Of a DNA stretch of 64,000 nt, positions 2,547 to 44,422 are shown piece after piece. Location of the stretch: positions 1 to 64,000 of the IMG/VR virus record IMGVR_UViG_3300027782_000027; one strand, given 5' to 3'. How positions within the stretch are numbered: the first letter of the stretch is position 1; every line of letters starts with the position of its first letter. Below the pieces are notes generated by a model. It was not told the origin of the DNA, ran no database searches, and saw nothing but the letters and a program-made list of their open reading frames with translations. Position numbers and translations under genes: made by a program.

Positions 2547-3086
2547 TTAATAAACAGGTCCTGATTTGAATTTTTTACATACAGGTATATTAGCTGTGGT
2601 TTTAAACTCTCTTGGAATTGCTTCACGTATTTTACCCCATTTATTATACGTATAAACATATTTGTCAATATCATTATATAAATCACCTTTAAATTTATAA
2701 TATGAGTTTACAAATTGACAAAAATCTTTGGCGGTTGAGATAGTTTTTATTGCTGGAGTTATTAAATCTTCTGAAGATGTTGTTTGAATATCTTTTTTTA
2801 CTTGATTTGCAGCATAATTTCCATCCCAAGCGTATGTGTCGGCTTTTGAATCATATCTACACCAATTAAATGAATTTACAACAATTTCATAGTCTTCAAA
2901 TCTTTCTTCACAAAGCCTAATACTTTCAGTCCCCGAATCAGGAAGGCTTGCTCCAAGTGATAATCCCATATCATTGAGACTCCCTATTAGGTTACCTGCT
3001 GGTACTCCCCCAATAGTTTGTTCTTTTATTACACGTTTTATTAAATTAATTAATTCAGATTCGGTTAGTCTAATTTTTTTACTCAT
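2547..3086 (-). CDS. hypothetical protein with KKIRLTESEL leader
   Basis: N-terminal leader shared with about 10 other ORFs. Confidence 0.75.
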   Translation of the reverse strand: MSKKIRLTESELINLIKRVIKEQTIGGVPAGNLIGSLNDMGLSLGASLPDSGTESIRLCEERFEDYEIVVNSFNWCRYDSKADTYAWDGNYAANQVKKDIQTTSSEDLITPAIKTISTAKDFCQFVNSYYKFKGDLYNDIDKYVYTYNKWGKIREAIPREFKTTANIPVCKKFKSGPVY

Positions 3087-3112
3087 TTTGTTTTTTTTAT
3101 ATAAATATATTA

Positions 3113-3451
3113 TTAATTTTCAGACGGTAATTTTAACGACCATTGGGAGCTCATTATCTTGTTGGACATTTGACCCTCCAAATTTAGTTTATTCTTAACC
3201 CATTGCCCAACAATTCTGGTGGATTGATAACTGTTAAGAGAAAAGAAGGAAGAAATGGCTTCAATTAAACCTTTATAGATAAAACACAATTCATTATTGG
3301 AATGATTACCACCATATTGAATTTGAGCTGACTCATCTTCAGGATATGAAAAATATATACTGGCACCAGTTTTAGTTATAATGAAATCCTGACTATCAAG
3401 ATACCTGAATATTACTTTATCTAATTGTGATTCTGTGATTAAATATTTCAT
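3113..3451 (-). CDS. MKYLITE-family small protein
   Basis: MKYLITESQLDKVIFRYLD...FFSL...WV paralog family. Confidence 0.8.
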   Translation of the reverse strand: MKYLITESQLDKVIFRYLDSQDFIITKTGASIYFSYPEDESAQIQYGGNHSNNELCFIYKGLIEAISSFFSLNSYQSTRIVGQWVKNKLNLEGQMSNKIMSSQWSLKLPSEN

Positions 3452-3819
3452 GATAATGTTATACTTCTAACTGATTTAACCTCATAGTCAGGAAAGAACT
3501 CATTAAATACATCTGACATAATGAATTTGCCGTGAACTAACCAAATGGGATGAGGAAACGCTGTACCATATATATCGTCAAAGTTCCTATTATAGTATAA
3601 ATCGCCACTTGGTTTATTATAAACCATTACAGCGTTTTGGTCACTATCAAATAAGTTAAGTCTTAAATCATTTTCATCATATGAATTAACCAAATTTGCA
3701 AAATAAGGAACCAATTTAGGTTTCAGTCTTTCGTATTGTTCCGTATATTCAGAATCTCTCCAAGTTCTTTCAAGTTCAGATATTAATTTATGTTGTGACT
3801 CGGTAATAATATACTTCAT
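3448..3819 (-). CDS. MKYIITE-leader small protein
   Basis: shared leader; upstream TATTTAT motif. Confidence 0.8.
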   Translation of the reverse strand: MKYIITESQHKLISELERTWRDSEYTEQYERLKPKLVPYFANLVNSYDENDLRLNLFDSDQNAVMVYNKPSGDLYYNRNFDDIYGTAFPHPIWLVHGKFIMSDVFNEFFPDYEVKSVRSITLS

Positions 3820-3851
3820 GTAATAATAAATATAATTATATTTATTATATT

Positions 3852-4175
3852 ATGAACCTACAAGAGAATATAAAAAAAGTATTAAGGGAAGAAACAGATT
3901 TTTCACCACAGTTCAAAAGAAGACTGAATAGATTTAAATCGTTTGTATGGGATAACAATGTAACTAATTATCCATGTGATTTTGAAAACTTTGAAGCGTT
4001 CATGCGTGGTATACAACATGAAATTATGGACATGATTACAGATGGTTCTGATACCGATGGTCCATTGTCTGAGTGGTTAAAATATAAAGATGGTGTTACG
4101 TATGTAGAAAACTACATGAGGGATGACTTAGAAAAGTTTTATAATAAAGAATGTGTTGATGTCTTATACGTATAA
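3852..4175 (+). CDS. MNLQENIKKVLREE-leader small protein
   Basis: leader shared with 5643 and 9201. Confidence 0.8.
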   Translation: MNLQENIKKVLREETDFSPQFKRRLNRFKSFVWDNNVTNYPCDFENFEAFMRGIQHEIMDMITDGSDTDGPLSEWLKYKDGVTYVENYMRDDLEKFYNKECVDVLYV

Positions 4176-4520
4176 ATCAAGAAATTGTTCCACTGTTATT
4201 CCAAGACCTGAGATACCAAATAAATTCATAAATTCAGATTCATCATATCTATCACATCCGTTATTGATAATCCAAGGAATATCTGTAACATAATTCATCT
4301 GATAAAGTATATCATAACTATTATCTAATTTTATAAGATACATCGGACCATAGTTATCCATACTAAGTCTTCTTCGTAAACCATCATCAGTAATACAGTT
4401 ATCAAAAGACATCATTACATCAATCAAATCTGGGTCAATCTCCACACGACCCGTAAGGTCAATATTAAATTTGTCTTTAATTAATGTTTTTAATTTTGAT
4501 TCAGTGATTAAGTATTTCAT
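4164..4520 (-). CDS. MKYLITE-leader small protein
   Basis: shared leader. Confidence 0.8.
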   Translation of the reverse strand: MKYLITESKLKTLIKDKFNIDLTGRVEIDPDLIDVMMSFDNCITDDGLRRRLSMDNYGPMYLIKLDNSYDILYQMNYVTDIPWIINNGCDRYDESEFMNLFGISGLGITVEQFLDLYV

Positions 4521-4536: not shown

Positions 4537-4947
4537 TTAACAGTTACCTGTATTATAAACCTCAATATTGTGACCTCTAATTAGACCTCCACCGAACTGA
4601 TATAAAGCCTTAGCAATAGTATCTCTATACACACTCCTATTACCTTCTTCATACATATACCTCCCCACATTTTCAGGTTCCGGCTTAGGTATGTAGACAA
4701 CCAAATCCATAGAGTTACGAGTGGGGATGATATTATAACTACAATATCTTAAGACGGTTGAAATATCATTTTCAAATATAGTTTTTGTTAGAAAGATAAT
4801 ATCTTCTCTTTTTCCTTCAAGACCAATCTCATCAATAATATCTTCAGGTTCCTTATCAGTCATTTTACACAGAGTACGCATACCAAATTTCTCTAATAAG
4901 GGTTTAAGAGTTTTGCTATATTGATTCTCAGTGATTAAGTATTTCAT
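4537..4947 (-). CDS. MKYLITE-leader small protein
   Basis: shared leader. Confidence 0.8.
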   Translation of the reverse strand: MKYLITENQYSKTLKPLLEKFGMRTLCKMTDKEPEDIIDEIGLEGKREDIIFLTKTIFENDISTVLRYCSYNIIPTRNSMDLVVYIPKPEPENVGRYMYEEGNRSVYRDTIAKALYQFGGGLIRGHNIEVYNTGNC

Positions 4948-4955: not shown

Positions 4956-5285
4956 TTAGTTATTTACTCTTATCCATACATTCGGTGCGGGTTTAGCCCC
5001 ACGGACTTGTACAACTATTACTTTGAGGGTATTTTCAACCCATCTACGGATAAGTTCCATGGAATCGGAGATACCCAAAGAAAAGAAAGAGGCCACTTCA
5101 TTAATTAAACTATTAACAATGTAACACCAGCCACTAATTTTATCATATCTAATCTCAGCGTATTCATCATCTTCTAAATTAACTAAAAATATAGTTGCAC
5201 CCTTTTTAATCTGAATAAAGTTCTTAATATCCAAATATCTAAAGATTACTCTGTCTAATTGTGATTCGGTGATAAGGTATTTCAT
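4956..5285 (-). CDS. MKYLITE-family small protein
   Basis: close paralog of 8520-8816. Confidence 0.8.
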   Translation of the reverse strand: MKYLITESQLDRVIFRYLDIKNFIQIKKGATIFLVNLEDDEYAEIRYDKISGWCYIVNSLINEVASFFSLGISDSMELIRRWVENTLKVIVVQVRGAKPAPNVWIRVNN

Positions 5286-5288: not shown

Positions 5289-5609
5289 TTAATATTCAAA
5301 AAACATAACATCAACATCAAATACTTTACTAAACCAATCAGAAATGAATTTACCTGATTGCTCTTTATCAAGTGGATACATGGATGAAAACTTATCTAAA
5401 AAAGATTCATCAATAAATAATCTACCATCACTATGGTCAAACTCCATTAAAATAAAAAAATCAGGGCCTCTTTCCTGGCTATATATATTAATGAAATCAC
5501 TATCTGATGTTCTATCATAATCTAATATATTATTTAACTCAGATATCATTAAATTATTTATTACCGATTTGGCTTTATCTAATTGTGATTCGGTGATAAG
5601 ATATTTCAT
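5289..5609 (-). CDS. MKYLITE-leader small protein (start moved to 5609)
   Basis: shared leader begins at codon 8 of the track ORF. Confidence 0.8.
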   Translation of the reverse strand: MKYLITESQLDKAKSVINNLMISELNNILDYDRTSDSDFINIYSQERGPDFFILMEFDHSDGRLFIDESFLDKFSSMYPLDKEQSGKFISDWFSKVFDVDVMFFEY

Positions 5610-5642
5610 ATAGAATATAAATATAATCATATTTATAATAAT

Positions 5643-5972
5643 ATGGACTTAAAAGAATCTATAAAAAGAATACTGAGGGAAGAACTATCGGCGAGAATTA
5701 AAAGAAGACTTTCTAATGATGAAATGGAAAATGAGTTTCTTGAATCTTTTGAAGGTGCTTATCGTCTTACAAAAGACAGAAAGGTTTTAAGTTCACATTT
5801 TTTAGATGAGTTAGTCTACACAACAATAACCTTTATGATGGATGGGGTACATTGGAGATTTGTTAGCACATTACCTGAAGATGAATTTTGGTATGATGAT
5901 ATACACCAAGGGTTAGAAAATCATTATAGAAAAAGAATTACACGGATGTATAATGAAAGAAAAGGTTTTTAA
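5643..5972 (+). CDS. MDLKESIKRILREE-leader small protein
   Basis: shared leader; similar to 3852-4175. Confidence 0.8.
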   Translation: MDLKESIKRILREELSARIKRRLSNDEMENEFLESFEGAYRLTKDRKVLSSHFLDELVYTTITFMMDGVHWRFVSTLPEDEFWYDDIHQGLENHYRKRITRMYNERKGF

Positions 5973-5975: not shown

Positions 5976-6254
5976 TTAATTAGAGTTTAAGAATTTAAGT
6001 AACGCTCCAATATATTTGGAACGTTTATCATAGAATTCAGTATCATCATCATATTGAAAAAACTCTTCACCTCTATGTCTATCAATGAACTTTTCAATTA
6101 ATTCATAAGCGTAATCATCTCTGTCGGCGGAATCTTCAAAATCTTCTTCATCCATAATGTAGTTATAATCATCCCTAAGTGCTTCCAATTCATCCATTGT
6201 AAACCTCCTAAGTAAAAATACTTCTAACTGTGATTCTGTAATTAAGTATTTCAT
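5976..6254 (-). CDS. MKYLITE-leader acidic small protein
   Basis: shared leader. Confidence 0.8.
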   Translation of the reverse strand: MKYLITESQLEVFLLRRFTMDELEALRDDYNYIMDEEDFEDSADRDDYAYELIEKFIDRHRGEEFFQYDDDTEFYDKRSKYIGALLKFLNSN

Positions 6255-6267: not shown

Positions 6268-6621
6268 TTAATCTGTAACTATTAATCTGTAATCATATGG
6301 ACCATCCCAAATCGTACTATTACTAATACCCAAAGTATTATTAACCCATTCTTTGATTATATCCAAACAATCCGATTTACCAATGGGTAATAAGGTAGAT
6401 AAATCCTCAGTCAAACTACGATTTACAAACACCCAATTCCTAACTTCACCAAAGGCGTTGTTAACATAAACACTAATCTGTGATTGACTATCTGACTCAC
6501 TGTTTAAGAAATATATATAATTGTTGAATCTCTTCTTGTTGTCATATATCACAAAGTCCTGAATATCAAGATACTTAAAGATTACTTTCTCTAATTTTGA
6601 TTCGGTGATAAGGTATTTCAT
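6268..6621 (-). CDS. MKYLITE-family small protein
   Basis: paralog family motif. Confidence 0.8.
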   Translation of the reverse strand: MKYLITESKLEKVIFKYLDIQDFVIYDNKKRFNNYIYFLNSESDSQSQISVYVNNAFGEVRNWVFVNRSLTEDLSTLLPIGKSDCLDIIKEWVNNTLGISNSTIWDGPYDYRLIVTD

Positions 6622-6633: not shown

Positions 6634-7002
6634 TTAGTTAAGGGGTATTCCCAATAACGAATGAATAAGGATGTCTTTGTTAGACGGTATTTTTAACCAA
6701 GACTGGGACATCAAAGTAGCCTTGGTGGTATTTGTAACCTTCATTTGTAGGGTATTCCCAACCCACCTACCAATAGCTGATTTAGAATCAGATTCGTCCA
6801 AAGAAAATAACGATGAGATGTTCTTGATTAATTCGGGACTTATTACACAACCAAAATTACCATTTTTGATTTGAGCATATTCATCATCTTCAGAGTTAAC
6901 GAAGTATACTAAAAGACCTATTTTAATTTGAATAAAATCTTGATGGTTCAAGTAAATAAAGATTGCTCTATCTAATTGTGATTCTGTAATTAAGTATTTC
7001 AT
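6634..7002 (-). CDS. MKYLITE-family small protein (start moved to 7002)
   Basis: leader begins at codon 15 of the track ORF. Confidence 0.8.
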   Translation of the reverse strand: MKYLITESQLDRAIFIYLNHQDFIQIKIGLLVYFVNSEDDEYAQIKNGNFGCVISPELIKNISSLFSLDESDSKSAIGRWVGNTLQMKVTNTTKATLMSQSWLKIPSNKDILIHSLLGIPLN

Positions 7003-7817: not shown

Positions 7818-8527
7818 ATAATTGGAAAACGATAATCATGAGTGACTTACACTTAGGAGCGAGACAATCACAGACAGATAAGATAATAAGTTTCTTGGAT
7901 AATAACACAACGGAAAAACTAATACTGAACGGTGATATAATAGATGGTTGGGCTCTCAAAGGTAATGGTAAATGGACAAAGGATTGTACCAAGATATTCA
8001 GGAAGTTCATGAAGATGTCCGAGAAGAATACAAAGGTAATTTATATAAGAGGAAACCATGATGACTTCTTAAAAGATTTTATTCCATTTAAATTAAACAA
8101 CATCAGGATTGTAAGGAAGTATGTTCATACAGGGATAGATAATAGAAAGTATTTTTGTTTTCACGGAGATGTATTGGATTTTGTTATAATGGAAGCAAGA
8201 TGGCTTGCAGTAATCGGTGGATGGTCATATGATATTGTCATTAAGTTTAATACTCTATATAACAAAATAAGAAAGTGGTTTAACTTACCATATCATTCAT
8301 TAGCTAACACAATAAAACAATCTGTAAAAGGGGCGATTAACTTTGTATCTGATTTTGAGGATAACGCGAAAGGTTTAACAAAACAAAAGGGATATGATGT
8401 TGCGGTGTGTGGACATATTCATCACCCGAAGATAGAGAATGACTATATGAACTCAGGAGACTTTTGTGAGAACTCTACATGTCTTGTAGAAGATTACAAT
8501 GGGGTGTGGAAAATAATTACTATCTAA
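7814..8527 (+). CDS. UDP-2,3-diacylglucosamine hydrolase-like (LpxH family) metallophosphoesterase
   Basis: SDLHLG, GDIID, GNHD, HGD, GHIH, NSGDF calcineurin-like motifs; translationally coupled to the GT2 gene. Confidence 0.85.
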   Translation: MNNWKTIIMSDLHLGARQSQTDKIISFLDNNTTEKLILNGDIIDGWALKGNGKWTKDCTKIFRKFMKMSEKNTKVIYIRGNHDDFLKDFIPFKLNNIRIVRKYVHTGIDNRKYFCFHGDVLDFVIMEARWLAVIGGWSYDIVIKFNTLYNKIRKWFNLPYHSLANTIKQSVKGAINFVSDFEDNAKGLTKQKGYDVAVCGHIHHPKIENDYMNSGDFCENSTCLVEDYNGVWKIITI

Positions 8528-8816
8528 CTATAACTTCTTTAACTCTTCTATCCAAAGTATTCTCAACCCATCTAGCAATAACATATTTAGAATTATCAAA
8601 TTCTATAGAGAAGAAATCTTTAATCTCATCAATTAACCCAAAAATTATTACACACTCACCACCTCTAAAGTATTCGATTGATGAGTCGATATATTCACCA
8701 CCTTCAGAATTGGCGAAGTAAATTGCACTCCCTCTTTTAATCTGAATAAAGTTCTTAATATCCAAATATCTAAAGATTACTCTATCTAATTGTGATTCTG
8801 TTATAAGGTATTTCAT
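8520..8816 (-). CDS. MKYLITE-family small protein
   Basis: paralog family motif. Confidence 0.8.
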   Translation of the reverse strand: MKYLITESQLDRVIFRYLDIKNFIQIKRGSAIYFANSEGGEYIDSSIEYFRGGECVIIFGLIDEIKDFFSIEFDNSKYVIARWVENTLDRRVKEVIVR

Positions 8817-8832: not shown

Positions 8833-9168
8833 TTAGAAGGGTAACCTCAATGTCAAACTTCCACTGTTTGTAATGGACATTGATTTTTCGTAACTGTATT
8901 TTACTTGTAATGTATCACCAATCCATCGAACAATAATCTTCTCAGAATCAGAATCACTCAAAGAAAATAATGATGAAATATCGTCAACTAATTCATAATT
9001 CATAAAAGAAAAATTATCACTCATATCGTATCTGATTTGACAATACTTATCACCTTCTGAATTAACAAAGTATATAGTGTCTTTATCCTCAACCTGAATA
9101 AAATCTTGATTGTCAAGATACCTAAAGATTACTTTTTCTAATTTAGATTCTGTGATAAGATATTTCAT
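8833..9168 (-). CDS. MKYLITE-family small protein
   Basis: paralog family motif. Confidence 0.8.
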   Translation of the reverse strand: MKYLITESKLEKVIFRYLDNQDFIQVEDKDTIYFVNSEGDKYCQIRYDMSDNFSFMNYELVDDISSLFSLSDSDSEKIIVRWIGDTLQVKYSYEKSMSITNSGSLTLRLPF

Positions 9169-9200
9169 ATGATAATAAATATAATTATATTTATAATATT

Positions 9201-9656
9201 ATGAACCTACAACAAAACATAAAAAGAATATTAAGGGAAGAATACACCGTAAAACAGATGAAGTTATTAACTATCGCAAGTCAGGTGGGGTTACTAAAGA
9301 CAGGAGAAATGTTCGGTGGTATAGAATACCTTATAAATGTGTTAGGTGATGAGTTCCTTACAACAAACAATAAGGTTAAGATTATTAGGGAAGTAGTAGA
9401 AACAACCGATTATGAATATATCACACTAATGGATATGAATGAAAACCCAATAGTTCTCAAGGTTGGAGACGGTAAACTTTCACAAATAGAAATGATAAAT
9501 AAAGAAGATGTTACAGTGTTCCATTATGGTGGATATGAATACTCACAAGATTTAGGTGAAAGTTATATATCTTATGAAGAACTACCAAAAGATGTATTAG
9601 ATGATATCTTTAATATGGTATTAGATTTCTATACAGATACTTTAGAGAATAAGTAA
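9201..9656 (+). CDS. MNLQQNIKRILREE-leader protein
   Basis: shared leader. Confidence 0.8.
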   Translation: MNLQQNIKRILREEYTVKQMKLLTIASQVGLLKTGEMFGGIEYLINVLGDEFLTTNNKVKIIREVVETTDYEYITLMDMNENPIVLKVGDGKLSQIEMINKEDVTVFHYGGYEYSQDLGESYISYEELPKDVLDDIFNMVLDFYTDTLENK

Positions 9657-10385
9657 TTATTGATTTAAGACCTGTTCCATCACATAATTCATTACAGACA
9701 TTTCTACATCCGTTGTACATACCTTATTATTTAATACCTCTTCCACTCCTCTTGTGAAAGGTCCAGAATATGCTTCCATTGTAGATACCTTATGATTTAA
9801 TACCTCTTCTACCTCAATTCTTCCAACGTAATCAAGTGAATCGGTTGTGGATACCTTATGATTTAAGACCTCTTCCACCAATGAATGTTCGGGGTATTTG
9901 AGAATGGTAGTTGTAGACACCTTAACATTATGACTTAATACATCTTCCACCTTCCAAGGAACACGAACTTTAACATCGCACGTTGTGGATACCTTATGAT
10001 TTAATACATCTTCCACCATCATGCTTTCAACACCGCTACCTGTCACGGTTGTGGATACCTTATGATTTAAGACCTCTTCCACCACGTAGTTCCTAAGCCC
10101 TATAGGGCGATATGTTGCGGATACCTTATGATTTAAGACCTCTTCCACCCAAGAAGATAGAACAGGACAAAAATCATCCGAACTCATGGAGAATATTTGA
10201 AAAAACGAATTAAAAAAATCGTATCTCCACCATAAAGTACCTGACTCATCAAGTTCAAAGTACCAATGTTTATTATCCCTATTAATGAACCATATAGACC
10301 CATTATAAGGAATAATCTCACAATCACCTAACTCTCTATATAGGTGTTTAAAAATAATTTGTTTTAATCTATCTGTAATAACCAT
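9657..10385 (-). CDS. repeat-array protein 4 (7 unique cassettes)
   Basis: paralog of 435-1235; TATATTTG element just upstream of the ATG. Confidence 0.85.
   Translation of the reverse strand: MVITDRLKQIIFKHLYRELGDCEIIPYNGSIWFINRDNKHWYFELDESGTLWWRYDFFNSFFQIFSMSSDDFCPVLSSWVEEVLNHKVSATYRPIGLRNYVVEEVLNHKVSTTVTGSGVESMMVEDVLNHKVSTTCDVKVRVPWKVEDVLSHNVKVSTTTILKYPEHSLVEEVLNHKVSTTDSLDYVGRIEVEEVLNHKVSTMEAYSGPFTRGVEEVLNNKVCTTDVEMSVMNYVMEQVLNQ
9712..10149. CRISPR. CRISPR-like array 4, in frame; 7 repeats (one with a 6-nt insertion) plus a degenerate one ending at 9681
   Basis: Repeats at 9712, 9778, 9844, 9910 (42 nt), 9982, 10048, 10114; all spacers 30 nt. Confidence 0.55.
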
Positions 10386-14241: not shown

Positions 14242-14739
14242 ATGAAAAAAGTTGTAAGATTAACAGAGTCGGATTTAACAAGAATTGTTAAACGAGTAAT
14301 AAATGAGAAAAAAGAAATGATTCGTATTACGGGTGATTATAGTGGGGCTAAACATGTACTTGGTAGTTCTGCATCTCCTGAAGATATTATGGATGAATAT
14401 AATAATGCAGTTGAAGAGGGAACACCTCTTGTTAGTTATTCTGATGGTGTGTTCTATAATCAGGATGATAAAGAGATTCCTGTAGACGTTGTTTTGGATG
14501 AATTGAATTATGCAATTCTTGGTTATGAAGAAGAAGATTATGATGATATGGGGGATTCTCCAAAACAAAAAAGATTTGGTGATGGTAATGAAAATGAAAT
14601 GTATTTAACCGATAATGTAAGGTTCCACCGTAAAGGGGGGAGGTTAACTTTAAGTTACACTCCGACTAAGACTATGGGAGGACTTACTATATCTGATAAA
14701 CAGAAGAAGATGTTAATTGATTTTTTAAACAGGAATTAA
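14242..14739 (+). CDS. MKKVVRLTESDL-leader protein
   Basis: shared leader; internal domain shared with 17769-18362. Confidence 0.8.
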   Translation: MKKVVRLTESDLTRIVKRVINEKKEMIRITGDYSGAKHVLGSSASPEDIMDEYNNAVEEGTPLVSYSDGVFYNQDDKEIPVDVVLDELNYAILGYEEEDYDDMGDSPKQKRFGDGNENEMYLTDNVRFHRKGGRLTLSYTPTKTMGGLTISDKQKKMLIDFLNRN

Positions 14740-15679: not shown

Positions 15680-16072
15680 ATGAAATACCAAATCACAAAG
15701 GAACAATATTCTAAACTTGTCTATAAGTTAATTGAAGCATTTTTTAAGGATGTTAAATTTTACAAAGATGATGGTGGGGGTTATTTGACTTATGATATTA
15801 CTGTTGATGGTGAGGATGTTGCTTATATTCACACGAAAAAAAGTCCTCATATAGCTAAGGGATGTGAATATGAACTTGTAATATATGACGATACTATATT
15901 AAAGATAACAGACTTTGTTCCGATTTTTAGGAAGAAGGTATTCTCAAAAATACTCATTAAATATTTTTCTGATATTACTGGCGAAGATATTGATTGTATT
16001 AATTTTGATATGAAACATCCTGGAAGTGATGATACAATTATATATACAAAAAAATTCAAAAAGAAAAAATAA
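15680..16072 (+). CDS. MKYQITKEQ-leader protein
   Basis: variant of the MKYLITE leader. Confidence 0.75.
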   Translation: MKYQITKEQYSKLVYKLIEAFFKDVKFYKDDGGGYLTYDITVDGEDVAYIHTKKSPHIAKGCEYELVIYDDTILKITDFVPIFRKKVFSKILIKYFSDITGEDIDCINFDMKHPGSDDTIIYTKKFKKKK

Positions 16073-16774: not shown

Positions 16775-16951
16775 ATGAAAAAATTATTAATTATCTTATC
16801 TATTGGTTTGTTTAGTTGTGGGTCATTAAAGAGTTCATCATGTTGTGATACTCATAAGGATTGTGTTAAACAGACTGAGTGTTGTGGTATGGACCACTGT
16901 GATAAAAATCATTGTGAGGGAAATTGTTGTGATTCATCTTGTTGTAGATAA
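16775..16951 (+). CDS. Cys-rich small lipoprotein (not in the ORF track)
   Basis: MKKLLIILSIGLFSC lipobox, then 11 more Cys in 43 aa; TATTTAT upstream, terminator downstream. Confidence 0.7.
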   Translation: MKKLLIILSIGLFSCGSLKSSSCCDTHKDCVKQTECCGMDHCDKNHCEGNCCDSSCCR

Positions 16952-17033
16952 TCTGATAATTTTATTATCTTAAACCCCTTTTTAAACGGAGGGGTTTTTT
17001 ATTTGTGTAGTATATTTATAATAAAATATTAAT

Positions 17034-17687: not shown

Positions 17688-17705
17688 ACCAATATTGAGT
17701 TATAC

Positions 17706-17733: not shown

Positions 17734-17768
17734 ATTTTATGATATATTTATATATAAATTAAAATATT

Positions 17769-18661: not shown

Positions 18662-18668
18662 AATTATT

Positions 18669-28907: not shown

Positions 28908-30695
28908 ATGAGGAATTTATTGACTGAAGTTAGTAAGATGAAAAACATGATGGGTTTACAAGAGGCAGATAAGCCAAAATATAACCCTGAAGTAAAATAT
29001 CTTGTTTCAGTTTTAAAAGATAATAAAGTGTATAGTGCTCAAATCCAAAAATTCATTAATAGGATTAATGAATTTTCAAAAGACGGTTTAGTTGATTTTG
29101 GATTAATTACCCGAGGTATTTTAAAAACTTTAAAGTTAAAAGGTAACAAAGATATTAATGTTTTTGAATTTTTCAAACAACTAACTAAATCATTAGAAAA
29201 AAGAAAAAATAAAAAAGAAGTTGTTAATCCTGAAGAAGAACCATCAATTTTAGATAAAGACATTTATAAAAAAGAAATATTTTTTCTACAGGTTGAACTT
29301 TTAAAGTTACAGGAATGGTTAAAACAAACAGGTAAAACTGTTATAATTGTTTTTGAAGGAAGAGACTCGGCAGGTAAAGGTTCTACAATTAAGAAATTCA
29401 CTGAAAATTTAAATCCAAGATATTATAAAGTTATTGCTCTTGGTATCCCAACACCTGATGAAAGAAAGAACTGGTGGGATAGATACAGTAATCAAATTGA
29501 AAAAGGTAAGATAAACTTCTTTGATAGAAGTTGGTACAATAGAGGATTAGTTGAACCTGTAATGGGTTATGGTTCATCAGAAGAGTACGAAGACTTTATG
29601 GATAATGTTCAGGATTTTGAAGAATCATTGGTTGTTGATGGGGATTACTTATTTAAACTTTGGTTCTCAATAGATAAAGAAACTCAAGCTAAGAGATTTG
29701 ATTTCAGACAGAAGTCACCATTGAAATATTGGAAGTATTCTGAGAATGATGAGAAGATGCAAGATGTGTGGGAAAAGTTTACAGAGTATAAACAAAAACT
29801 TTTTGATAAAACATCAACCGTAAACCATCCGTGGGTTATTTTGGACGCTAACGATAAAAAGATTTCAGGTTTAAACTCAATTAGATACGTTTTACAAAAT
29901 ATTCCTTATACAAATAAGGATGAGGATGTTTTAAACAAAGACTTCCCTGAAGCGATGACGGTTTTAAAACCAAATATTAATGAGCAATCAGTTTTTGATT
30001 TCTATAACCAATTAACGGGTAAATCACAACAAAAACAAGAACCAAATTTTATGGATACATGGTCATCTATGGGACAACCAAAAGACCAAATGACACCAAA
30101 TTCAGGAGGTGCTGTTGATGCAGTTAAAGCTGGTGCTAAAAAAATTGCAAAAATTGCAAAAGAAAAGTCATCAAATTCAAATACAGTTGGGGTCGGAACA
30201 GTTTCAGATAAACTTGTAAATTTTGTAGCGAATATTGAGTTTTTTGTTAAGTGTGTTTATGACGACGCTAAAGGTGGTAAATGTGTGAGAAAAGAACCTG
30301 ATTGTTGTTTAAGAGGAAAATCCCCAACTCCCGGAGCAAAGGCAACAATAGGTTATGGTACAACGTATTATCCTGGTGGAATACCTGTTAAACCTAATGA
30401 CCCTGACATTACTGAAACAAGAGCAAAAGAATTAATGAGAAATACATTAAACAAAAATGCAAAAAAAATACTTAATTTATACCCAAACTTAAATCAACAA
30501 CAATTAGATGCGATGGCTTCATTATGTTACCAAATGGGACCTGATGGTTGTACAACAGAAGCTCCAAATTTATCAGCAGCCTTAAAAAGTAATCCAAATA
30601 ATTTACAAAATGTTGGACAACATTTTGTTGATTTCCCATTCAAAGACAGAAGAGAAAAAGAGTGGAAAATTTATAGTCAAGGAATTTATTCTTAA
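28908..30695 (+). CDS. ppk2: polyphosphate kinase 2 fused to a C-terminal GH24 lysozyme-like domain
   Basis: FEGRDSAGKG and FDRSWYNR (PPK2); E...VYDD, TIGYG, LNQQQLDAMASL.Y..G, RR.KE (phage lysozyme). Confidence 0.85.
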   Translation: MRNLLTEVSKMKNMMGLQEADKPKYNPEVKYLVSVLKDNKVYSAQIQKFINRINEFSKDGLVDFGLITRGILKTLKLKGNKDINVFEFFKQLTKSLEKRKNKKEVVNPEEEPSILDKDIYKKEIFFLQVELLKLQEWLKQTGKTVIIVFEGRDSAGKGSTIKKFTENLNPRYYKVIALGIPTPDERKNWWDRYSNQIEKGKINFFDRSWYNRGLVEPVMGYGSSEEYEDFMDNVQDFEESLVVDGDYLFKLWFSIDKETQAKRFDFRQKSPLKYWKYSENDEKMQDVWEKFTEYKQKLFDKTSTVNHPWVILDANDKKISGLNSIRYVLQNIPYTNKDEDVLNKDFPEAMTVLKPNINEQSVFDFYNQLTGKSQQKQEPNFMDTWSSMGQPKDQMTPNSGGAVDAVKAGAKKIAKIAKEKSSNSNTVGVGTVSDKLVNFVANIEFFVKCVYDDAKGGKCVRKEPDCCLRGKSPTPGAKATIGYGTTYYPGGIPVKPNDPDITETRAKELMRNTLNKNAKKILNLYPNLNQQQLDAMASLCYQMGPDGCTTEAPNLSAALKSNPNNLQNVGQHFVDFPFKDRREKEWKIYSQGIYS

Positions 30696-30713: not shown

Positions 30714-31031
30714 ATGAAAAAGTTTATTATCACAGAAAACCAATTAGAATTTATCGTTAAAAGATATATTAACGAAGATGCAAGATACGTAATGTCTTTT
30801 GACGAATTTATGAAACATAAAAACAAAGACCAACAATATAAATGTGGTTATGAAAACTTATGTTTTATCATTCATGATGGAAATCACCAAATTGACTTGG
30901 ATGAAAAATTCCATGAAACACACAAAATTCCTAATGGAGTTGGTGGAACAATTTACCACGATGGTAATAATACTTATTTCTGTCCTGACTTTGGTGATGA
31001 TAGACCACAAAGAACTATTCAGGTTTATTAA
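30714..31031 (+). CDS. MKKFIITENQL-leader protein
   Basis: variant leader. Confidence 0.75.
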   Translation: MKKFIITENQLEFIVKRYINEDARYVMSFDEFMKHKNKDQQYKCGYENLCFIIHDGNHQIDLDEKFHETHKIPNGVGGTIYHDGNNTYFCPDFGDDRPQRTIQVY

Positions 31032-34129: not shown

Positions 34130-34825
34130 ATGAAAAAACTATTTGAAATTTCTTCGGAAGAAAAACAAAGAATATTGGAAATGCATGAAAGTGCCACCAA
34201 GAGAAATTATTTAAGTGAACTAGACACAACACAAGCAACTACTAAACCAGTTAAAACAACACAAATTATACCAGGTGCGGAATCAGTTGAATCTTTTATT
34301 ATACCAAGAGATTTTTGTAAAGTTCAATATGGGATTGATTTACAAAAAATTATTGATGAATATAGACAAGGTATCACTCAAGGATATTTGATTGGTAAAG
34401 ATAAACCATATTTATGGTCTGTTGAACAAGATGATTCCAAATTCGTACAATTTCAGATTAACGAATTATTTAAAACAGGTAATTTGGACCGAGTACAAAC
34501 GGTGACTTATTACAAAGATTCAAAATCATGGGGACAACAATATTTACGTCCAGATTCCGAAAAAGTTAATAACGATAAAGTTACTGACGAATATTGGAAA
34601 CCTACATTTTTTTGGAGAGGAATAGTTAACGATTTATCTCAAATAACGAATTCTTTAGTGTTAACTAGATTTCTTCAGGCTAGTAAACAAATGAATCAAC
34701 CATATAATTTAAAAGATATGATAAATAAAAAATCGCAATTGTATGTAAATCCTGAAAGTGATATTAGTCAACAAACAATAGACAATATAAAATCATCTTT
34801 AGTATATAAGACTCTTGCAACTTAA
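34130..34825 (+). CDS. hypothetical protein with ISSEEKQRILEMH leader
   Basis: shared leader type. Confidence 0.75.
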   Translation: MKKLFEISSEEKQRILEMHESATKRNYLSELDTTQATTKPVKTTQIIPGAESVESFIIPRDFCKVQYGIDLQKIIDEYRQGITQGYLIGKDKPYLWSVEQDDSKFVQFQINELFKTGNLDRVQTVTYYKDSKSWGQQYLRPDSEKVNNDKVTDEYWKPTFFWRGIVNDLSQITNSLVLTRFLQASKQMNQPYNLKDMINKKSQLYVNPESDISQQTIDNIKSSLVYKTLAT

Positions 34826-36825: not shown

Positions 36826-37029
36826 ATGACAAAAATGAAACGAATTCTAAAGGAAAATGTTGCCACTTACTGCCTTATGCTCGCAATGTTTTTCAACCCA
36901 CTAGGATTCGACATAATGTTCAAAGCAATTTTAGACTACACAAGTTCTTATTGGATTACCACAGGAATTTTTTATTGTATATCGGGATTGTTCTTTGGGT
37001 TGTATTTCTTATTACGAAGTAAAAAATGA
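36826..37029 (+). CDS. small two-TM membrane protein
   Basis: hydrophobic; overlaps the next start. Confidence 0.6.
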   Translation: MTKMKRILKENVATYCLMLAMFFNPLGFDIMFKAILDYTSSYWITTGIFYCISGLFFGLYFLLRSKK

Positions 37030-37625
37030 ATATCAAAAAACTTATCAAAAAAGTTCTTACAGAATCGGTGGAAAAACCACTTATTTCAGAACACCTTAAT
37101 TATCATATAACAAATGAAGTACCATTGAATGATAATATCTTCAGATTTGGTTCAGAAGAGTTCTTTAATGTTATTAACGAAGCTCGTGAGTTGTATTACG
37201 AAGGAATGGTTGAGTTAAATGAAGATGATGTTGAACTTATTGAATCTGATTTTGGAACACAGGTTAGATTATCAAGTGGTAGAGTTATTTACTTGGATAC
37301 TCCTATGGAAGAATCATTTATTTCTGAGGCGGAACATAATGGTAAGAAAGTTGAACTTGGTAAACCAAGAAGAAACAGTGGTGGTGGAAAAAAATACGTT
37401 GTTTATGTTAAAAACCCATCGACAGGTAGAGTTAAAAAGATTTCATTTGGTGATGTTAAAGGTGGATTAACCGCTAAGGTATCTAATCCTAAAGCTCGTA
37501 AATCATTTGCCGCAAGACATCAGTGTTCTAAAAAGAAAGATAGATTAACTGCGGGGTACTGGGCATGTAGACTCAATCGCTTTGGTTACCTCTGGGGAGG
37601 TAAAACTTATCCAGGATTTTGGTAA
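37026..37625 (+). CDS. conserved T4-like phage hypothetical protein
   Basis: KKY.VYVKNP..G.VKKISFGD, ARKSFAARH.C, AGYWAC. Confidence 0.75.
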   Translation: MNIKKLIKKVLTESVEKPLISEHLNYHITNEVPLNDNIFRFGSEEFFNVINEARELYYEGMVELNEDDVELIESDFGTQVRLSSGRVIYLDTPMEESFISEAEHNGKKVELGKPRRNSGGGKKYVVYVKNPSTGRVKKISFGDVKGGLTAKVSNPKARKSFAARHQCSKKKDRLTAGYWACRLNRFGYLWGGKTYPGFW

Positions 37626-37626: not shown

Positions 37627-37893
37627 ATGAAACCGTATAAAGATAGAAAACTAACAGAAACTTCAAAGATTAGAGTTTTTAAATCCAATGTTGATAGTGG
37701 TGAACTACAATGGCATCGTGATAGAGAAGATAGATTGGTTGAAGTGGTACAAGGTGATGGATGGAAATTTCAAATGGATAATCAACTACCTATAGAGTTA
37801 ACTGAAGGACAAGTATTATTAATCCCTGAAGGAACTTACCACAGAATATTCAGAGGAACGTCTGATTTGGAATTAAAGATTGATTTTATTTAG
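37627..37893 (+). CDS. cupin-fold small protein
   Basis: WHRDREDR..EV and IPEGTYHRI. Confidence 0.7.
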   Translation: MKPYKDRKLTETSKIRVFKSNVDSGELQWHRDREDRLVEVVQGDGWKFQMDNQLPIELTEGQVLLIPEGTYHRIFRGTSDLELKIDFI

Positions 37894-38506
37894 TAATTCT
37901 ATCAACGATTAAATCCATAAGTCGTTTTAAGAAATTACCCGAAATTGTTATTAATCCAAATGCCGATAATGATTTAACCAACATTTCAGTATCTTTCATA
38001 TCCCATATACCTTCAGAGACAGCGTCATATATCATTGGTATAATTGGAACCAAGAATGCATAACTTAACATATTTGTCACACTGAATGCTGATAAATTCA
38101 AACTCTTTAAAAAACCTGCCAAAACAGTTTTAAGTTGATTAGCTTTAATTGCTCCCAATTTAAATGGTTCTTCAAGTCCGTCTTCTTTAATCTTTTTAAT
38201 AATTGATTTGGTAAAACTTCTTTCCTGAAAGAATATTACTGAAGCAATACCCGCAGCAATCAATGATGAATCTTTTTCTGTTAACTCTGGTACCTGTCCA
38301 TTTAACCATTGCATAATTGGTCCCATAAACCCTCCAATTGCCGCACCCCATGTAAGCATCATCTTTAAGTTTATTGAAGCATGTGATTTAGTGTCTTCAA
38401 CAATCTTTTTAGTTAGTTCAACACCATCTTCTTGAACTTCTTTAATCCTATCATTTATTGATTCAAGGATAATTTGCTTTTGAGATTCTTTAATTATATA
38501 TTTCAT
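37886..38506 (-). CDS. MKYIIKESQ-leader membrane protein
   Basis: variant leader and several hydrophobic helices. Confidence 0.75.
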   Translation of the reverse strand: MKYIIKESQKQIILESINDRIKEVQEDGVELTKKIVEDTKSHASINLKMMLTWGAAIGGFMGPIMQWLNGQVPELTEKDSSLIAAGIASVIFFQERSFTKSIIKKIKEDGLEEPFKLGAIKANQLKTVLAGFLKSLNLSAFSVTNMLSYAFLVPIIPMIYDAVSEGIWDMKDTEMLVKSLSAFGLITISGNFLKRLMDLIVDRITK

Positions 38507-39927: not shown

Positions 39928-40395
39928 ATGAGAAACGCATTTTTTTTGAATATTACTAAAGAAGAAAAAGAATCAATACAAGATAAACACAGAAGTCAAT
40001 ATGATGGATATGTTACTCGTGGATTTAACACACCAAAAGAACAAATCCTTAATGTTGAAAATTTGGCGTTAGATGAAAAAGGAATTACTGTTAATAATAA
40101 AGGTGATGTTACTGAATATAGAAACACGAACATTAATCAAAAACTTAAAAAAGTTTGTGAACAATGTACTGGATTATATGAAGGTGATATGTGTGAACAA
40201 TGTTCATCCATGAAAGAAGGTGAAATGTGTGAGCAGTGTGGTGGTGGAATAAAAGAGGGAGAACAATGTGAACAGTGTTCAACTAAATCATATTCTATGG
40301 AAGAAATTGAAGAAGGTATTAAAGTAAAATCAAAGGCTTATTTAGTACAAGAACAAATTAATGAATCACTTAAGTGGTTCAAGAAAATCATTTAA
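39928..40395 (+). CDS. protein with four CEQC repeats
   Basis: (EG..)CEQC x4. Confidence 0.75.
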   Translation: MRNAFFLNITKEEKESIQDKHRSQYDGYVTRGFNTPKEQILNVENLALDEKGITVNNKGDVTEYRNTNINQKLKKVCEQCTGLYEGDMCEQCSSMKEGEMCEQCGGGIKEGEQCEQCSTKSYSMEEIEEGIKVKSKAYLVQEQINESLKWFKKII

Positions 40396-41037: not shown

Positions 41038-42873
41038 ATGGATAGTAAACAAGAATTATTAGAAAGAGTGTTGTTGATGATGAAATATGACTCATCAAGA
41101 ACTTTAAATGAAAATGTTCAAATTATAAATGAACAGTCAGATGCAAATTGGAAAACCAAATATGCGTGTGTTCCCAAACACTATGGTGCTACAAAGGATA
41201 CTTTAAAAGATGGCTCTACCGCATATAAAATTAATGGACTTTATTATTACAACAACGGAAGAGCTCAACCGTCACGAACATATTCATGTAATGACGCTTT
41301 TTTCAAATATCCTAAAAATCAAGTCGATGGAGATGCGTTTAGAAAATGGTTTTATAAGAATTATAGTAATGACAAATATTTAGGTAACATTGCAAAAAAA
41401 TATAAAGTTTCACAAACAGGTCCTTACAATTCACCTGAATTAAGAAATGCTTGGGAATCGTATGGGTGGGAATTTTTAGAAGGTGGAGGGAAATTAACAC
41501 CAGATGAAGTAATTGCTAAACGAAAAGAAATAGAAAATTCTGATATTGATGGTTATATGAGAAAGGTATGGGGAACAAGTTTTTCTATGCCTAACGCTAA
41601 ATCTAAACAAGAATGGATTAATGGTTATGCTAAGTACGCGGCTAAAGAAATTGAAGGAGCTATTTACATGGTGTGGGGTACTAATCCTGATGGTAAATGT
41701 TCTAGAAAAGATAAATCATTTTTGGATGATAAACCAATCGGTTTAAAATGGCCTTCATTATGGGAAAGATTAAATAAAAAAGGAAGTTACAATGACGGAG
41801 GTAGTACGGTTAACGAATATAATACATGTTATAATGAAGATGTTGCAATGGGATTAAAAGATGCTTACAAACCTTCTTGGGACCATGTCGTTAAAGCTTA
41901 CGGTATCAATACTACAGTATCTGTTGAAAAGATTGTTGATAAATTATGGAAAACATATACGGATGGTCATGGAAGTATTTCAAACGTACCGTCATATAGT
42001 AATCGTAGAATTTATAGAAATACGGGTTCTGTTTCAAAATCGGGTGGTATAACAATGGAAGAATTCCATGAAATTATGATGTATTTAGAAATAGGTTCAG
42101 CGTTTATACCTGGTATCGGCCCTATATTATCTTTCGGATTTGGTTTTGGTGACGCATTATTTTATATGGATGAAAATCCGGAAATGGGGGCCTTTGTTTT
42201 ACTTTTAACTGTATTACCTGAATTAAAATTGTTTACTAATACTGTAAAATTAGGTAAAGCAACAGGTGTTTATGCCACTACCTTAAATAAACTCGCCAAA
42301 GGTGATGTTAAAGCGTTAACGAAACAAGAGATTGCGTTTGTTAATGAAGTTAAGACATTAGTTGAAACAAATAAAGGTGAGGTTAAATCTGAAGTTAAAA
42401 AGGTTGTAGGTAAAGAAGCTGATAAAATTTTAAATAATCCAAGTGCGAAAAAACAATTAAAACAGGAAGAGATTAAAGCTTTAAACACAGTATCTGCTGC
42501 GAAAAATTTAGAATTTTTAAAATTAGATACTTTATTTGGTATTGCTTTACCATTTACAACAAAATATGGTAGAGATATATTAAAACGAATTTTTGGATTA
42601 TATGAAGAAAATTTTGGAGGAATGACGGAAGCTCAATGGGTTGATTTAGAAAGAAAACTTAATAAAGTTCCTAAAGAAGTAATGCCTCCAACTGTTACCG
42701 CTTTTGAAAACAAACCTGAGGAGTTTGTAGCGTATGTAAAAGAAGAAAAAGTTTCTAAAGCAATTAATTCAAGATTACAAAACTTAACACTAAAAGTACC
42801 ATTAAACCAATTAGAGACTAAAACAACTGAAGAAGATATTGCTGTTATGATGGCACAAGAACCAAACAAATAA
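41038..42873 (+). CDS. large putative virion-internal protein with hydrophobic hairpin
   Basis: leader ending INEQ; AFIPGIG.....FG..DA..Y segment. Confidence 0.65.
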   Translation: MDSKQELLERVLLMMKYDSSRTLNENVQIINEQSDANWKTKYACVPKHYGATKDTLKDGSTAYKINGLYYYNNGRAQPSRTYSCNDAFFKYPKNQVDGDAFRKWFYKNYSNDKYLGNIAKKYKVSQTGPYNSPELRNAWESYGWEFLEGGGKLTPDEVIAKRKEIENSDIDGYMRKVWGTSFSMPNAKSKQEWINGYAKYAAKEIEGAIYMVWGTNPDGKCSRKDKSFLDDKPIGLKWPSLWERLNKKGSYNDGGSTVNEYNTCYNEDVAMGLKDAYKPSWDHVVKAYGINTTVSVEKIVDKLWKTYTDGHGSISNVPSYSNRRIYRNTGSVSKSGGITMEEFHEIMMYLEIGSAFIPGIGPILSFGFGFGDALFYMDENPEMGAFVLLLTVLPELKLFTNTVKLGKATGVYATTLNKLAKGDVKALTKQEIAFVNEVKTLVETNKGEVKSEVKKVVGKEADKILNNPSAKKQLKQEEIKALNTVSAAKNLEFLKLDTLFGIALPFTTKYGRDILKRIFGLYEENFGGMTEAQWVDLERKLNKVPKEVMPPTVTAFENKPEEFVAYVKEEKVSKAINSRLQNLTLKVPLNQLETKTTEEDIAVMMAQEPNK

Positions 42874-42913
42874 TTTTTTATCAAAACAATAATATTTATA
42901 AAAAAAGACAAAA

Positions 42914-44422
42914 ATGAAATCAGAAATTTTACTTGAAATAAATAGAGTTAAAGAGATTATGGGGTTATCCCCATCATTACTCAACGAGCAACTTGCGTTT
43001 TTAAAATCAATTGCAAAATCAGGAAAGGCAGAATTAAAGGCAGAATTAAAAAATTATTTAGATACATATGCAAAGGCTATGAATGTAAGTACGGACACCG
43101 CTCTTGAAGCATTTGAAAAAGACTATGCTGAGGCTTTGTTAAAAAATGACGATAATGTAGTTAATAAAGTATTTGATGATTATTTTAGTATTGTTTCTAA
43201 AGATTATGCGGATGATTTAATTGAGATGTATGCGAGAGTTTCACCTATAGAATTTGGTAAAGAGGTAGTCGGTGCTCAGTTAGGAGTTCAATATAAAGGA
43301 GTGTATGCTAAATATATTAAACCAGAAACTAAACTTACCGACGAAACTTTTAACAGTGTTAGAAATATGTTATACGATGTTAAATCTAAAAAATTAAATA
43401 TTGTTGGAGATAGTTCTGCGGACATATTAGCAAGAGAGTCTCTTGCAGAATTTGAAGAAGCTCTTGAAAAGAAATTTACTGATTATAACGATGAGTATAT
43501 TAAAAGGGAAGAAAAAAGAGAAGCTGAGGAAATACTAAAACAACAAGAAAAGGAACTGGCAACAAGAAGTTTAGATGACTGGTATGATGATGTTTATACG
43601 GTTGATACTAAAAATGCAAGTAAAAAGCCATTAACAAGAGAAGAATTCAAAGCTCAGGTAAAATCAGCTCAAGCTAAAGTCGCTGGTGCAAAACCAGTAG
43701 ACATTGTAAAAGAGTTAATTGAAAGTGCTCCGAATAAGAAAAATGCGGTTGAATACATTAATAATGCGTTTAGAAAAAAAGGAGGTGTTGGAGATGTTGT
43801 TGACATGGCGGCAGATGGTAGTATAAAGACAACTAATAAATTGGTTGAATTTACAAAATCACTTGGAGCATTGGGTTGGGGAGGGTTATTAGTTATAGGT
43901 ATTGCGGTTGCGGTTTTTGCACCAAGTGTTATTGAGTCTATTTACCAAAAATATAAAGAAATGAGCACTAAGTATAATGATGTTTATGATGCTCTTGGGG
44001 AAAGATTATCTGGAAATTATTATGATTTACCTGATGATGTTAAATTTTTTATTAGTCGGGAATTCACAATTGAACAAGCTAAAAAAAATGACACTACACC
44101 ATATATTAAAAATATAGAATATAAAGAAAATACGGACTCTGAGGCAGGTTCAATAACAATTAAAATGAGTGATGACTCTATTGTAAAATATGAAACCTCT
44201 GATGGTAAAACATTTAATAAAGTTGGTGGTGAAGGTGAAGTTGAAAGCGGAAAAAAAACTGAAGAGGAATTTAAAGCCGCCGCTATAAAAGGAGGTTTTG
44301 ATATTGGAAAATCATTTGTTAAACAAACAGACACAAAATATTGGGGGGTTGATAACGATGATACAGAAAGTACTACTGAATGGAACGGGACAACGTTTAT
44401 TGTAACGGCAGGACACATTTAA
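42914..44422 (+). CDS. large helical putative virion-internal protein with one TM segment
   Basis: leader LLEINRVKEIMGL...LNEQ; TM GALGWGGLLVIGIAVAVFA. Confidence 0.65.
   Translation: MKSEILLEINRVKEIMGLSPSLLNEQLAFLKSIAKSGKAELKAELKNYLDTYAKAMNVSTDTALEAFEKDYAEALLKNDDNVVNKVFDDYFSIVSKDYADDLIEMYARVSPIEFGKEVVGAQLGVQYKGVYAKYIKPETKLTDETFNSVRNMLYDVKSKKLNIVGDSSADILARESLAEFEEALEKKFTDYNDEYIKREEKREAEEILKQQEKELATRSLDDWYDDVYTVDTKNASKKPLTREEFKAQVKSAQAKVAGAKPVDIVKELIESAPNKKNAVEYINNAFRKKGGVGDVVDMAADGSIKTTNKLVEFTKSLGALGWGGLLVIGIAVAVFAPSVIESIYQKYKEMSTKYNDVYDALGERLSGNYYDLPDDVKFFISREFTIEQAKKNDTTPYIKNIEYKENTDSEAGSITIKMSDDSIVKYETSDGKTFNKVGGEGEVESGKKTEEEFKAAAIKGGFDIGKSFVKQTDTKYWGVDNDDTESTTEWNGTTFIVTAGHI

Follow-up and report, generated by a model that had tools for sequence, protein, structure and literature searches.

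Related N-terminal leaders as candidate capsid-targeting tags on many proteins of an uncultured T4-type jumbo phage

The stretch of DNA analysed here, called the window throughout, comprises 64,000 nucleotides (nt) and is the first 64 kb of a single viral contig of 240,759 bp (IMG/VR record IMGVR_UViG_3300027782_000027; 32% GC, completeness estimated at 82% by CheckV). Judged by its genes, the contig belongs to an uncultured freshwater T4-type myovirus, a jumbo phage. Between positions 2547 and 44422 of the window, 37 genes were found by six-frame scans to encode products that start with one of six related short peptides, which we call leaders; the part of the protein behind the leader is called the body. 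The six classes are given here with the number of genes and with the form in which each contains the motif [LI]-x-E (leucine or isoleucine, any residue, glutamate).

Class A, MKY[LI]ITES[QK]L: 17 genes, 14 strict (MKY[LI]ITE) and 3 loose; motif LITE
Class B, MKK[IV][VI]RLTESDL..IVKRVI.E: 10 genes; motifs RLTE and VI.E
Class C, MNLQENIK[KR][IV]LREE: 3 genes; motif LRE
Class D, MRNIE.Y..RF.NLMESTIG.VKPLI.E: 2 genes; motifs LME and LI.E
Class E, ..ITESEKQRIL.MH: 2 genes; motif ITE
Class F, ..L.E......[MI]MGL: 3 genes; motif LTE or MGL.E

At least one [LI]-x-E is retained in all six classes, and a core [LI]-[TQ]-E-[SN] is common to them. All leader matches start at the ATG of an open reading frame. 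The strict matches are confined to 2.5-44.4 kb of the genome, with none in the other 196 kb. Hidden Markov models (HMMs) of the leaders add looser variants at 37026-37625, in three genes adjoining the capsid gene (71946-73703) and at 132308; further leader-like starts were recognized by eye at 44432 and at 238-240 kb. In the six-frame scan the pattern [RK]L[TS]E[SNR][DE]L gave 10 matches, 8 of which continue with [IV][IV]K[RKT][VI][ILV].E. The individual genes are as follows; TATTTAT is a promoter-like motif treated below.

3113-3451 (-): class A (MKYLITESQL), body family of eight genes
3448-3819 (-): class A (MKYIITESQ), separate body, TATTTAT 13 nt upstream
3820-3851: TATTTAT promoter-like element, palindromic bidirectional pair, 13 nt from each ATG
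3852-4175 (+): class C (MNLQENIKKVLREE), divergent from 3448-3819 across the 32-bp palindromic double TATTTAT spacer
4164-4520 (-): class A, separate body
4537-4947 (-): class A (MKYLITENQ), separate body
4956-5285 (-): class A, body family; structure model described below
5289-5609 (-): class A, body family; starts at the leader ATG, not at the upstream ATG
5643-5972 (+): class C (MDLKESIKRILREE)
5976-6254 (-): class A, separate acidic body
6268-6621 (-): class A, body family
6634-7002 (-): class A, body family
8520-8816 (-): class A, body family
8833-9168 (-): class A, body family
9201-9656 (+): class C (MNLQQNIKRILREE)
15680-16072 (+): loose class A (MKYQITKEQ)
20516-20827 (+): class A, separate body
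21679-21990 (+): class A, distant member of the body family
23817-24164 (+): loose class A (MKYIIDQKQL)
30714-31031 (+): A/B hybrid leader (MKKFIITENQLEFIVKRYINE)
37886-38506 (-): class A variant (MKYIIKESQ)
2547-3086 (-): class B (MSKKIRLTESELINLIKRVIKE)
14242-14739 (+): class B; body segment in common with 17769-18362
17034-17687 (+): class B; structure modelled, two better-predicted domains after the leader
17769-18362 (+): class B, acidic body
18464-18661 (+): class B, 65 amino acids (aa)
19123-19779 (+): class B
19795-20502 (+): class B
24204-24500 (+): class B, basic 76-aa body
27191-27607 (+): class B with a transmembrane (TM)-like segment
35422-36246 (+): class B; T/Q/P-rich linker directly after the leader
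18669-19052 (+): class D (MRNIE.Y..RF.NLMESTIG.VKPLISE)
20895-21677 (+): class D; body of MORN repeats and PG_binding_1
25643-26254 (+): class E (MKRLVITESEKQRILGMH)
34130-34825 (+): class E (..ISSEEKQRILEMHE)
39928-40395 (+): class E-like variant (..ITKEEKESIQDKH) recognized by eye; no leader-HMM match
28908-30695 (+): class F (MRNLLTEVSKMKNMMGLQE); body of PPK2 and Phage_lysozyme
41038-42873 (+): loose class F, 611 aa, no Pfam or PHROG match
42914-44422 (+): class F (MKSEILLEINRVKEIMGL), 502 aa, TM-like segment
37026-37625 (+): C/D hybrid leader (MNIKKLIKKVLTESVEKPLISE), found with the leader HMMs

An earlier note on this DNA had described a few interchangeable N-terminal leaders on many proteins, and the scans confirm them at the same positions. 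Its counts of about 17, 10 and 2 genes for classes A, B and D agree with the 17, 10 and 2 found, and where it gave ranges of 3-4, 2-3 and 3-4 genes for classes C, E and F, the scans found 3, 2 and 3. It had further spoken of more than 35 unrelated proteins. The number holds with 37 genes, but "unrelated" was an overstatement, as about 29 body types are left among the 37 genes when the first 30 residues are removed: eight class A genes form one diverged family of proteins of about 100 aa, and two class B genes have a body segment in common. The bodies range from 44 to 586 residues and most are acidic and soluble; three have a TM-like segment. Pfam matches were obtained for the bodies of 28908-30695 (PPK2 and Phage_lysozyme) and 20895-21677 (MORN and PG_binding_1), in agreement with the MORN/peptidoglycan (PG)-binding, PPK2, TM and acidic proteins of the note, whereas most bodies had no match in Pfam and 10 leader proteins searched against PHROGs fell into no family.

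The same leader is found on different bodies both within this genome and between related phages. In the window the class B leader occurs on nine body types, and the class F leader that precedes a 595-aa body here (28908-30695) precedes a 233-aa body in a syntenic relative. When residues 1-40 of a class B protein were used as query in a word-indexed search, 276 metagenomic protein clusters were returned; among the 120 matches listed, 118 have the leader and 93 combine it with differing bodies, some of which contain LysM, MORN or PG-binding domains. Degenerate DNA scans of IMG/VR gave at least 119 stretches with a class B leader and at least 117 with a class A leader, and among the matches listed the two were often on the same contigs. 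When the leader was removed from 125 class B proteins from IMG/VR (protein lengths 65-380 aa), BLASTP sorted the bodies into 102 clusters, and on this ground class B is a truly portable tag; by their bodies, so are classes C-F. Class A is mixed: 74 of 104 class A proteins from IMG/VR belong to one family, so that the leader is in part the N-terminus of this growing family and in part portable, being found on nine other bodies in the window.

Relatives also contain hybrid leaders of the types A/E/F and C/F, e.g. MGKFVITEEEKKHIMGL and MNLQEQISRMQSMMGL, which retain [LI]-x-E; the leader classes therefore recombine. A complete relative of 293,850 bp (G005) has 37 leader-HMM matches in the equivalent region, which wraps round the contig ends and adjoins the head module. 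Like the genome studied here (72665-73703), this relative also has leader-bearing genes beside the capsid gene (73672-74717). It contains a homologue for 41% of the leader-gene bodies versus 75% of the genes elsewhere in the genome; the bodies thus turn over quickly. Freshwater metatranscriptome contigs were compared with 16900-22000. This phage was absent, and only about 40-60 nt of leader-coding sequence of relatives was matched: the contigs match 17769-17833, 19138-19178, 19804-19845 and 20913-20965 only, with 90-95% identity, and then diverge. Because these stretches encode leaders, the leader genes of related phages may be transcribed in nature, with DNA being possible in the RNA libraries according to the run record.

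Codon alignments of the leaders showed that third positions vary freely. Where two leaders have the same residue, the codon is identical as well in 55% of pairs for class A and in 66% for class B, versus about 50% expected from the codon usage of the genome, so that the synonymous sites are close to saturation. As the residues nevertheless stay invariant, selection acts on the leader peptide. An RNA element, a translation signal and recent gene conversion were considered as explanations of the conservation and rejected because of this saturation.

The class B leader hardly varies over positions 1-20; the residue at position 21 is free (entropy 2.35 bits), E22 is invariant again, and from about position 24 the sequence is random. 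The invariance is partly a product of retrieving the proteins by their leader; the pattern of I, a free residue, E and then divergence is not. Typically Q/T/S/P-rich polar residues follow E22. In an AlphaFold2 (AF2) model of the class B protein 17034-17687, residues 9-24 of the leader form a helix of low confidence, with a predicted local distance difference test score (pLDDT) of about 55, falling below 50 at residues 17-25 where the I-x-E site lies, and this prediction fits an exposed junction at I-x-E. The motif is also enriched, with 0.95 [LI]-x-E per N-terminus in genes of the leader region versus 0.54 elsewhere (p = 0.006). An L/I-x-E at the end of the leader is consistent with a tag of the T4 type, not proof of one; the motif alone is weak evidence and takes its weight from the protease, the capsid site and the core protein described below.

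TATTTAT, behind which the earlier note had already placed most of the leader genes, occurs 194 times on both strands of the sequence, and 87 of these occurrences are within 60 nt upstream of a start codon on the same strand (a zone covering 3.4% of the sequence). The distances to the ATG peak at 11-14 and 19-25 nt. No -35-like element accompanies the motif; counted from its first base, a conserved A follows at 11-12 nt. Within 60 nt upstream of the start, TATTTAT was found in 28 of the 37 leader genes but in only 10 of 48 genes of this region that have no leader (p = 7e-7), whereas a host-type TAnnTTTG box precedes only 1 of 37 leader genes compared with 11 of 48 non-leader genes (p = 0.01). 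TATTTAT also precedes the genes for the terminase (60092), portal, protease, scaffold, sheath, tube and gp25. It looks like a phage-specific single-element promoter similar to the late type of T4 and common to virion and leader genes, and we infer that the genes behind it are expressed late. In three spacers of 32-33 bp (3820-3851, 5610-5642 and 9169-9200), each lying between a class A and a class C gene in divergent orientation, TATTTAT forms a palindromic back-to-back pair, 13 nt from each ATG; given the position of the conserved A, many of the messenger RNAs started there would be leaderless or nearly so. A search for a late sigma factor similar to gp55 gave one clear Sigma70_r2 gene at 201.4-202.2 kb and a sub-threshold match at 79.4-80.1 kb.

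A second class of promoter, TTG ... TATATTTGTA, of the Bacteroidota sigma-A type, was found at 12964, 26324 (-), 27689, 34832 (-), 36259 (-) and 52874 (-) and, further along the genome, at 72202 (-) and 225792; in the window it mostly stands before signal-peptide or lipoprotein genes. Since canonical boxes of this type (TTG ... TAnnTTTG) occur before some of the genes, they suggest a Bacteroidota host. The DNA runs that contain the phage sequence, with up to 97% of its sampled words, are freshwater metagenomes.

The head genes are of the T4 type. A large terminase that is distantly T4-like is encoded at 60092-61837, and just outside the window follow a gp20 portal (PF07230, E 2e-75), a gp21-family prohead protease (Peptidase_S77, PF03420, E 2e-26; genome positions 66499-67218), a very acidic scaffold-like protein of 464 aa and a major capsid protein of the gp23 type (PF07068, E 3e-72). 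Genes for the tail sheath, tube and gp25 were likewise identified. Between the protease and T4 gp21 the identity is 33%, and the ILIE/LLIE segments at their N-termini align, as do ELNHP and SSRG. BLASTP aligns HLINE60/ASS of the capsid protein onto FLTE65/AEI of T4 gp23, which is cleaved after Glu65; I-N-E60/A would thus be the candidate processing site corresponding to L-T-E65/A. Between portal and protease lies the gene of a 236-aa protein with 11 [LI]-x-E motifs, which would fit a core protein that gets degraded. The S77 protease was present in all six leader-bearing genomes that are at least 90% complete. When a complex was predicted between this protease and residues 1-45 of a class B protein, the score was 0.00, which says nothing about whether the two bind.

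The closest known system is the capsid-targeting sequence of T4, which is present on IPI, IPII and IPIII (and in the Alt propeptide) and is removed by gp21. T4 IPII and IPIII both start with MKTYQEFIAE, and IPI (95 aa) has ...STITE at residue 19, leaving a mature form of 76 residues. In T4, gp21 cleaves after L/I-x-E (PMC9026906); 10 residues of the sequence suffice to load foreign proteins, and the targeting residues are separable from the processing residues I8 and E10 (PMC3012670, PMC9026906). The likeness extends to several points: a short N-terminal leader ending in I-x-E on small proteins that evolve fast and have nothing else in common; a protease of the gp21 family, together with an acidic scaffold and a gp23 capsid protein whose cleavage site aligns; and genes situated in a plastic region outside the core head module. 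There are also differences. About 37-40 such genes per genome are found here and 3-4 in T4, i.e. about ten times more; the leaders fall into six inter-related, recombining classes, some of 22-28 residues with two [LI]-x-E sites; and the putative cargo includes enzymes of up to about 600 aa.

The jumbo phages phiKZ, 201phi2-1 and SPN3US are comparable in having dozens of head-internal proteins, including families of paralogues, and a gp21-related protease that removes N-terminal propeptides after Glu. Their propeptides are long, are not common to unrelated proteins and are cut at S/A-x-E, whereas the leaders here contain [LI]-x-E. Propeptides of the phiKZ type were therefore rejected as a model, on account of the motif and of the T4-type head genes (Pfam matches for gp20, gp21 and gp23). 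Encapsulins use a cargo-loading peptide, a short portable peptide that directs diverse cargo into a shell of the HK97 fold. These peptides are usually C-terminal and uncleaved and bind the shell directly, and neither a protease nor DNA is involved; the leaders share with them the short portable peptide but are N-terminal and have a candidate cleavage site. The leader strings themselves were not mentioned in the literature searched, and a search for the concept gave only work on T4, phiKZ and SPN3US. With a class B protein as query, tblastn found no match among 50,697 GenBank phage records even at E 10, and megablast with 19 kb of the phage DNA gave no match either, so that no cultured relative was found whose proteomics could be borrowed.

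The reading best supported by these comparisons, on circumstantial evidence, is that the leaders form an expanded, multi-class capsid-targeting system of the T4 type, to which we assign a probability of roughly 0.55; they would probably load a large and fast-changing protein cargo into the capsid. According to this model the leader is an N-terminal propeptide tag, basic or amphipathic, of 7 to about 28 residues and built round [LI]-x-E. Expressed together with the virion genes, it would give the attached protein an affinity for the acidic scaffolding core of the prohead. The S77 prohead protease would then remove it after the Glu of [LI]-x-E, and the mature body would stay within the head and presumably leave with the DNA at infection. 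Because such a tag works independently of the body, new cargo genes could be recruited by fusion to a leader, and a large, fast-turning-over repertoire would therefore result. The earlier note had likewise proposed a capsid-targeting tag, and of what this predicts at the level of sequence, all that could be checked was found: modularity, selection on the peptide, the boundary at [LI]-x-E, the protease, the I-x-E of the capsid protein, a motif in common with virion genes and fast turnover of the cargo. The further claim of the note, an effector cargo for injection, we infer from the T4 precedent only.

Several observations weigh against this model. Class A resembles MKTYQEFIAE only in MK, an aromatic residue and I-x-E, and classes B-F are unlike it; since similarity in sequence is missing, the leaders may at most work like the T4 sequence, and homology is not shown. 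[LI]-x-E is short and common, and is present in the first 30 residues of 43% of the other genes. TATTTAT also precedes a gene for a DnaB-like helicase and may thus not be specific for late genes. As the leader-bearing genomes are all of one clade, the co-occurrence of protease and leaders is not phylogenetically independent. TM-like segments, as found in three of the cargo candidates, are unusual in proteins located inside the head. Finally, class A may in part reflect ordinary family conservation, because in the structure prediction its leader enters the first helix of a confident fold and only 7 residues would be removed.

The main rival explanation is that the leaders are uncleaved tags for interaction or localisation, addressed to another machine (for instance a phage chaperone or unfoldase, a protein with which they oligomerise, or a compartment for replication or assembly), and that the proteins act in the infected cell. 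The leader is predicted to be an amphipathic helix, and possible partners are encoded in the region, namely a ClpA/B-type AAA+ protein (52874-54937), an FKBP isomerase (26656-27081) and a DnaJ-zinc-finger-like protein (47978-48745). However, the Clp gene stands behind a host-type box and the leader genes behind the motif that they share with virion genes, capsid targeting alone has a direct precedent, and both the [LI]-x-E in every class and the end of class B conservation exactly at I-x-E are left unexplained. We therefore consider this explanation unlikely, though it deserves more weight than those that follow.

Alternatively, the leaders could be the best-conserved part of fast-diverging paralogues whose bodies are homologous beyond recognition, and have no function as tags. 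This would suit the 8 of 17 class A genes in the window, and the majority in IMG/VR, that form one family. The AF2 model of this family (46 sequences; 4956-5285) is a compact alpha/beta fold with a pLDDT of 88, in which residues 1-4 are floppy and the leader continues into a helix at residues 5-20. A fold search with the model found no match in the PDB (best E 0.14) and, in BFVD, matched only uncharacterised proteins of uncultured phages. The explanation is at odds with the 102 body clusters of class B and their spread in length, with the unrelated Pfam domains on the bodies (LysM, MORN, PG_binding, PPK2, lysozyme), which already point to differing folds in classes B-F, with the polar linkers after the leader and with the existence of hybrid leaders. 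Family conservation accounts for part of class A only, and as a general account it is improbable.

Still less probable is that the conserved unit is a DNA cassette of terminator, promoter and first codons, which is moved by recombination and carries the peptide as a passenger. Such units are known as promoter-stem-loop cassettes, mobile regulatory elements of T4-type phages that are conserved as DNA, and the likeness is that here too the region is plastic and its small accessory genes are bordered by units of terminator and promoter. Stem-loop terminators and TATTTAT are directly upstream of many leader genes, the hybrids indicate recombination within leaders, and the RNA contigs of relatives match the leader-coding 40-60 nt only. 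In contrast to these cassettes, it is the peptide that is conserved here: nucleotide conservation including silent sites was not found (55-66% identical codons, with about 50% expected), and synonymous sites near saturation with invariant residues require selection on the peptide and exclude recent homogenisation or an RNA element. The cassette is thus largely refuted as the cause of conservation and may still describe the shuffling of cargo genes.

That the leaders are signals for export to the membrane or periplasm is almost certainly wrong: some bodies do act on peptidoglycan (lysozyme, PG_binding_1), but the leaders are highly charged throughout and look quite different from the canonical signal and lipoprotein peptides of neighbouring genes (12964, 16775, 34832 and 36259), and Sec, Tat or lipoprotein signal peptides were rejected since the hydrophobic core of at least 10 residues after a basic N-terminus is not present. 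In ribosomally synthesised and post-translationally modified peptides (RiPPs), a conserved leader precedes a core peptide that is short and hypervariable, and a maturase is encoded nearby. RiPP-type leaders were rejected because of the bodies of 44-586 residues, some with enzyme domains; in the Pfam scans, which did not go through the region gene by gene, no gene matched a maturase-like family.

Several further genes were noted around the leader genes. Four paralogues at 435-1235, 1222-1899, 1883-2521 and 9657-10385 (all on the minus strand) have the N-terminus M(K)VTDRLKQ..FK.LYKELG in common, which contains no [LI]-x-E; a TAnnTTTG box precedes two of the copies. They form a separate expanded family that adjoins the class A cluster. 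The ClpA/B-type gene (minus strand; AAA, AAA_lid_9, AAA_2 and ClpB_D2-small) encodes a double-ring AAA+ protein, has a TAnnTTTG box upstream and adjoins the head genes and a gene for a full-length tmRNA at 50464-50856 (-) (Rfam RF00023, 130.5 bits, model positions 1-374 of 374), whose tag peptide is AKLSTLGLIRTEEVSVA according to ARAGORN. A tRNA-Arg(TCT) gene is located at 47205-47279. The FKBP-type isomerase (minus strand) was identified via its orthologue in a relative (L007); also nearby are genes for a protein similar to class II aminoacyl-tRNA synthetases (tRNA-synt_2; 27886-28710, -), an Amidase_2 protein of 553 aa (48773-50434, +), a GAF-domain protein (47442-47981, +) and an HNH endonuclease (46171-46665, -). 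Between the terminase and portal genes a 426-aa protein with a long run of T/P-rich repeats (TPTNTxTPTNT...) is encoded at 61842-63122 (+). Outside the window, the gene at 107623-109128 (-) encodes an Fe/Mn superoxide dismutase (Sod_Fe_N and Sod_Fe_C at residues 36-226) that is extended by about 35 aa at its N-terminus (MKSLNIVSESLVSRLLGEE...) and by about 275 aa at its C-terminus, and has a TATTTAT motif upstream.

Extending the capsid-targeting model to the related genomes, we tentatively propose, with rather less confidence than for the model itself, that in a widespread clade of 240-320-kb freshwater T4-type phages, which probably infect Bacteroidota, about 13% of the genes belong to a combinatorial system of several recombining leader classes which loads more than 100 different accessory proteins clade-wide into the head for delivery with the DNA. 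If true, this would be the largest and most modular arsenal of injected proteins known in a phage; the known cases so far are a handful of internal proteins of T4 that were found experimentally. If the leaders are tags, they mark by sequence alone a large, fast-evolving set of proteins that enter the cell ahead of gene expression, and these proteins would be natural candidates for functions in anti-defence and host takeover. The leaders would then also represent natural portable packaging tags that end in a candidate protease site and with which proteins could be loaded into large capsids, and their motifs can serve as search handles for such cargo in metagenomes. The multi-class, recombining design would show how a phage recruits new cargo.

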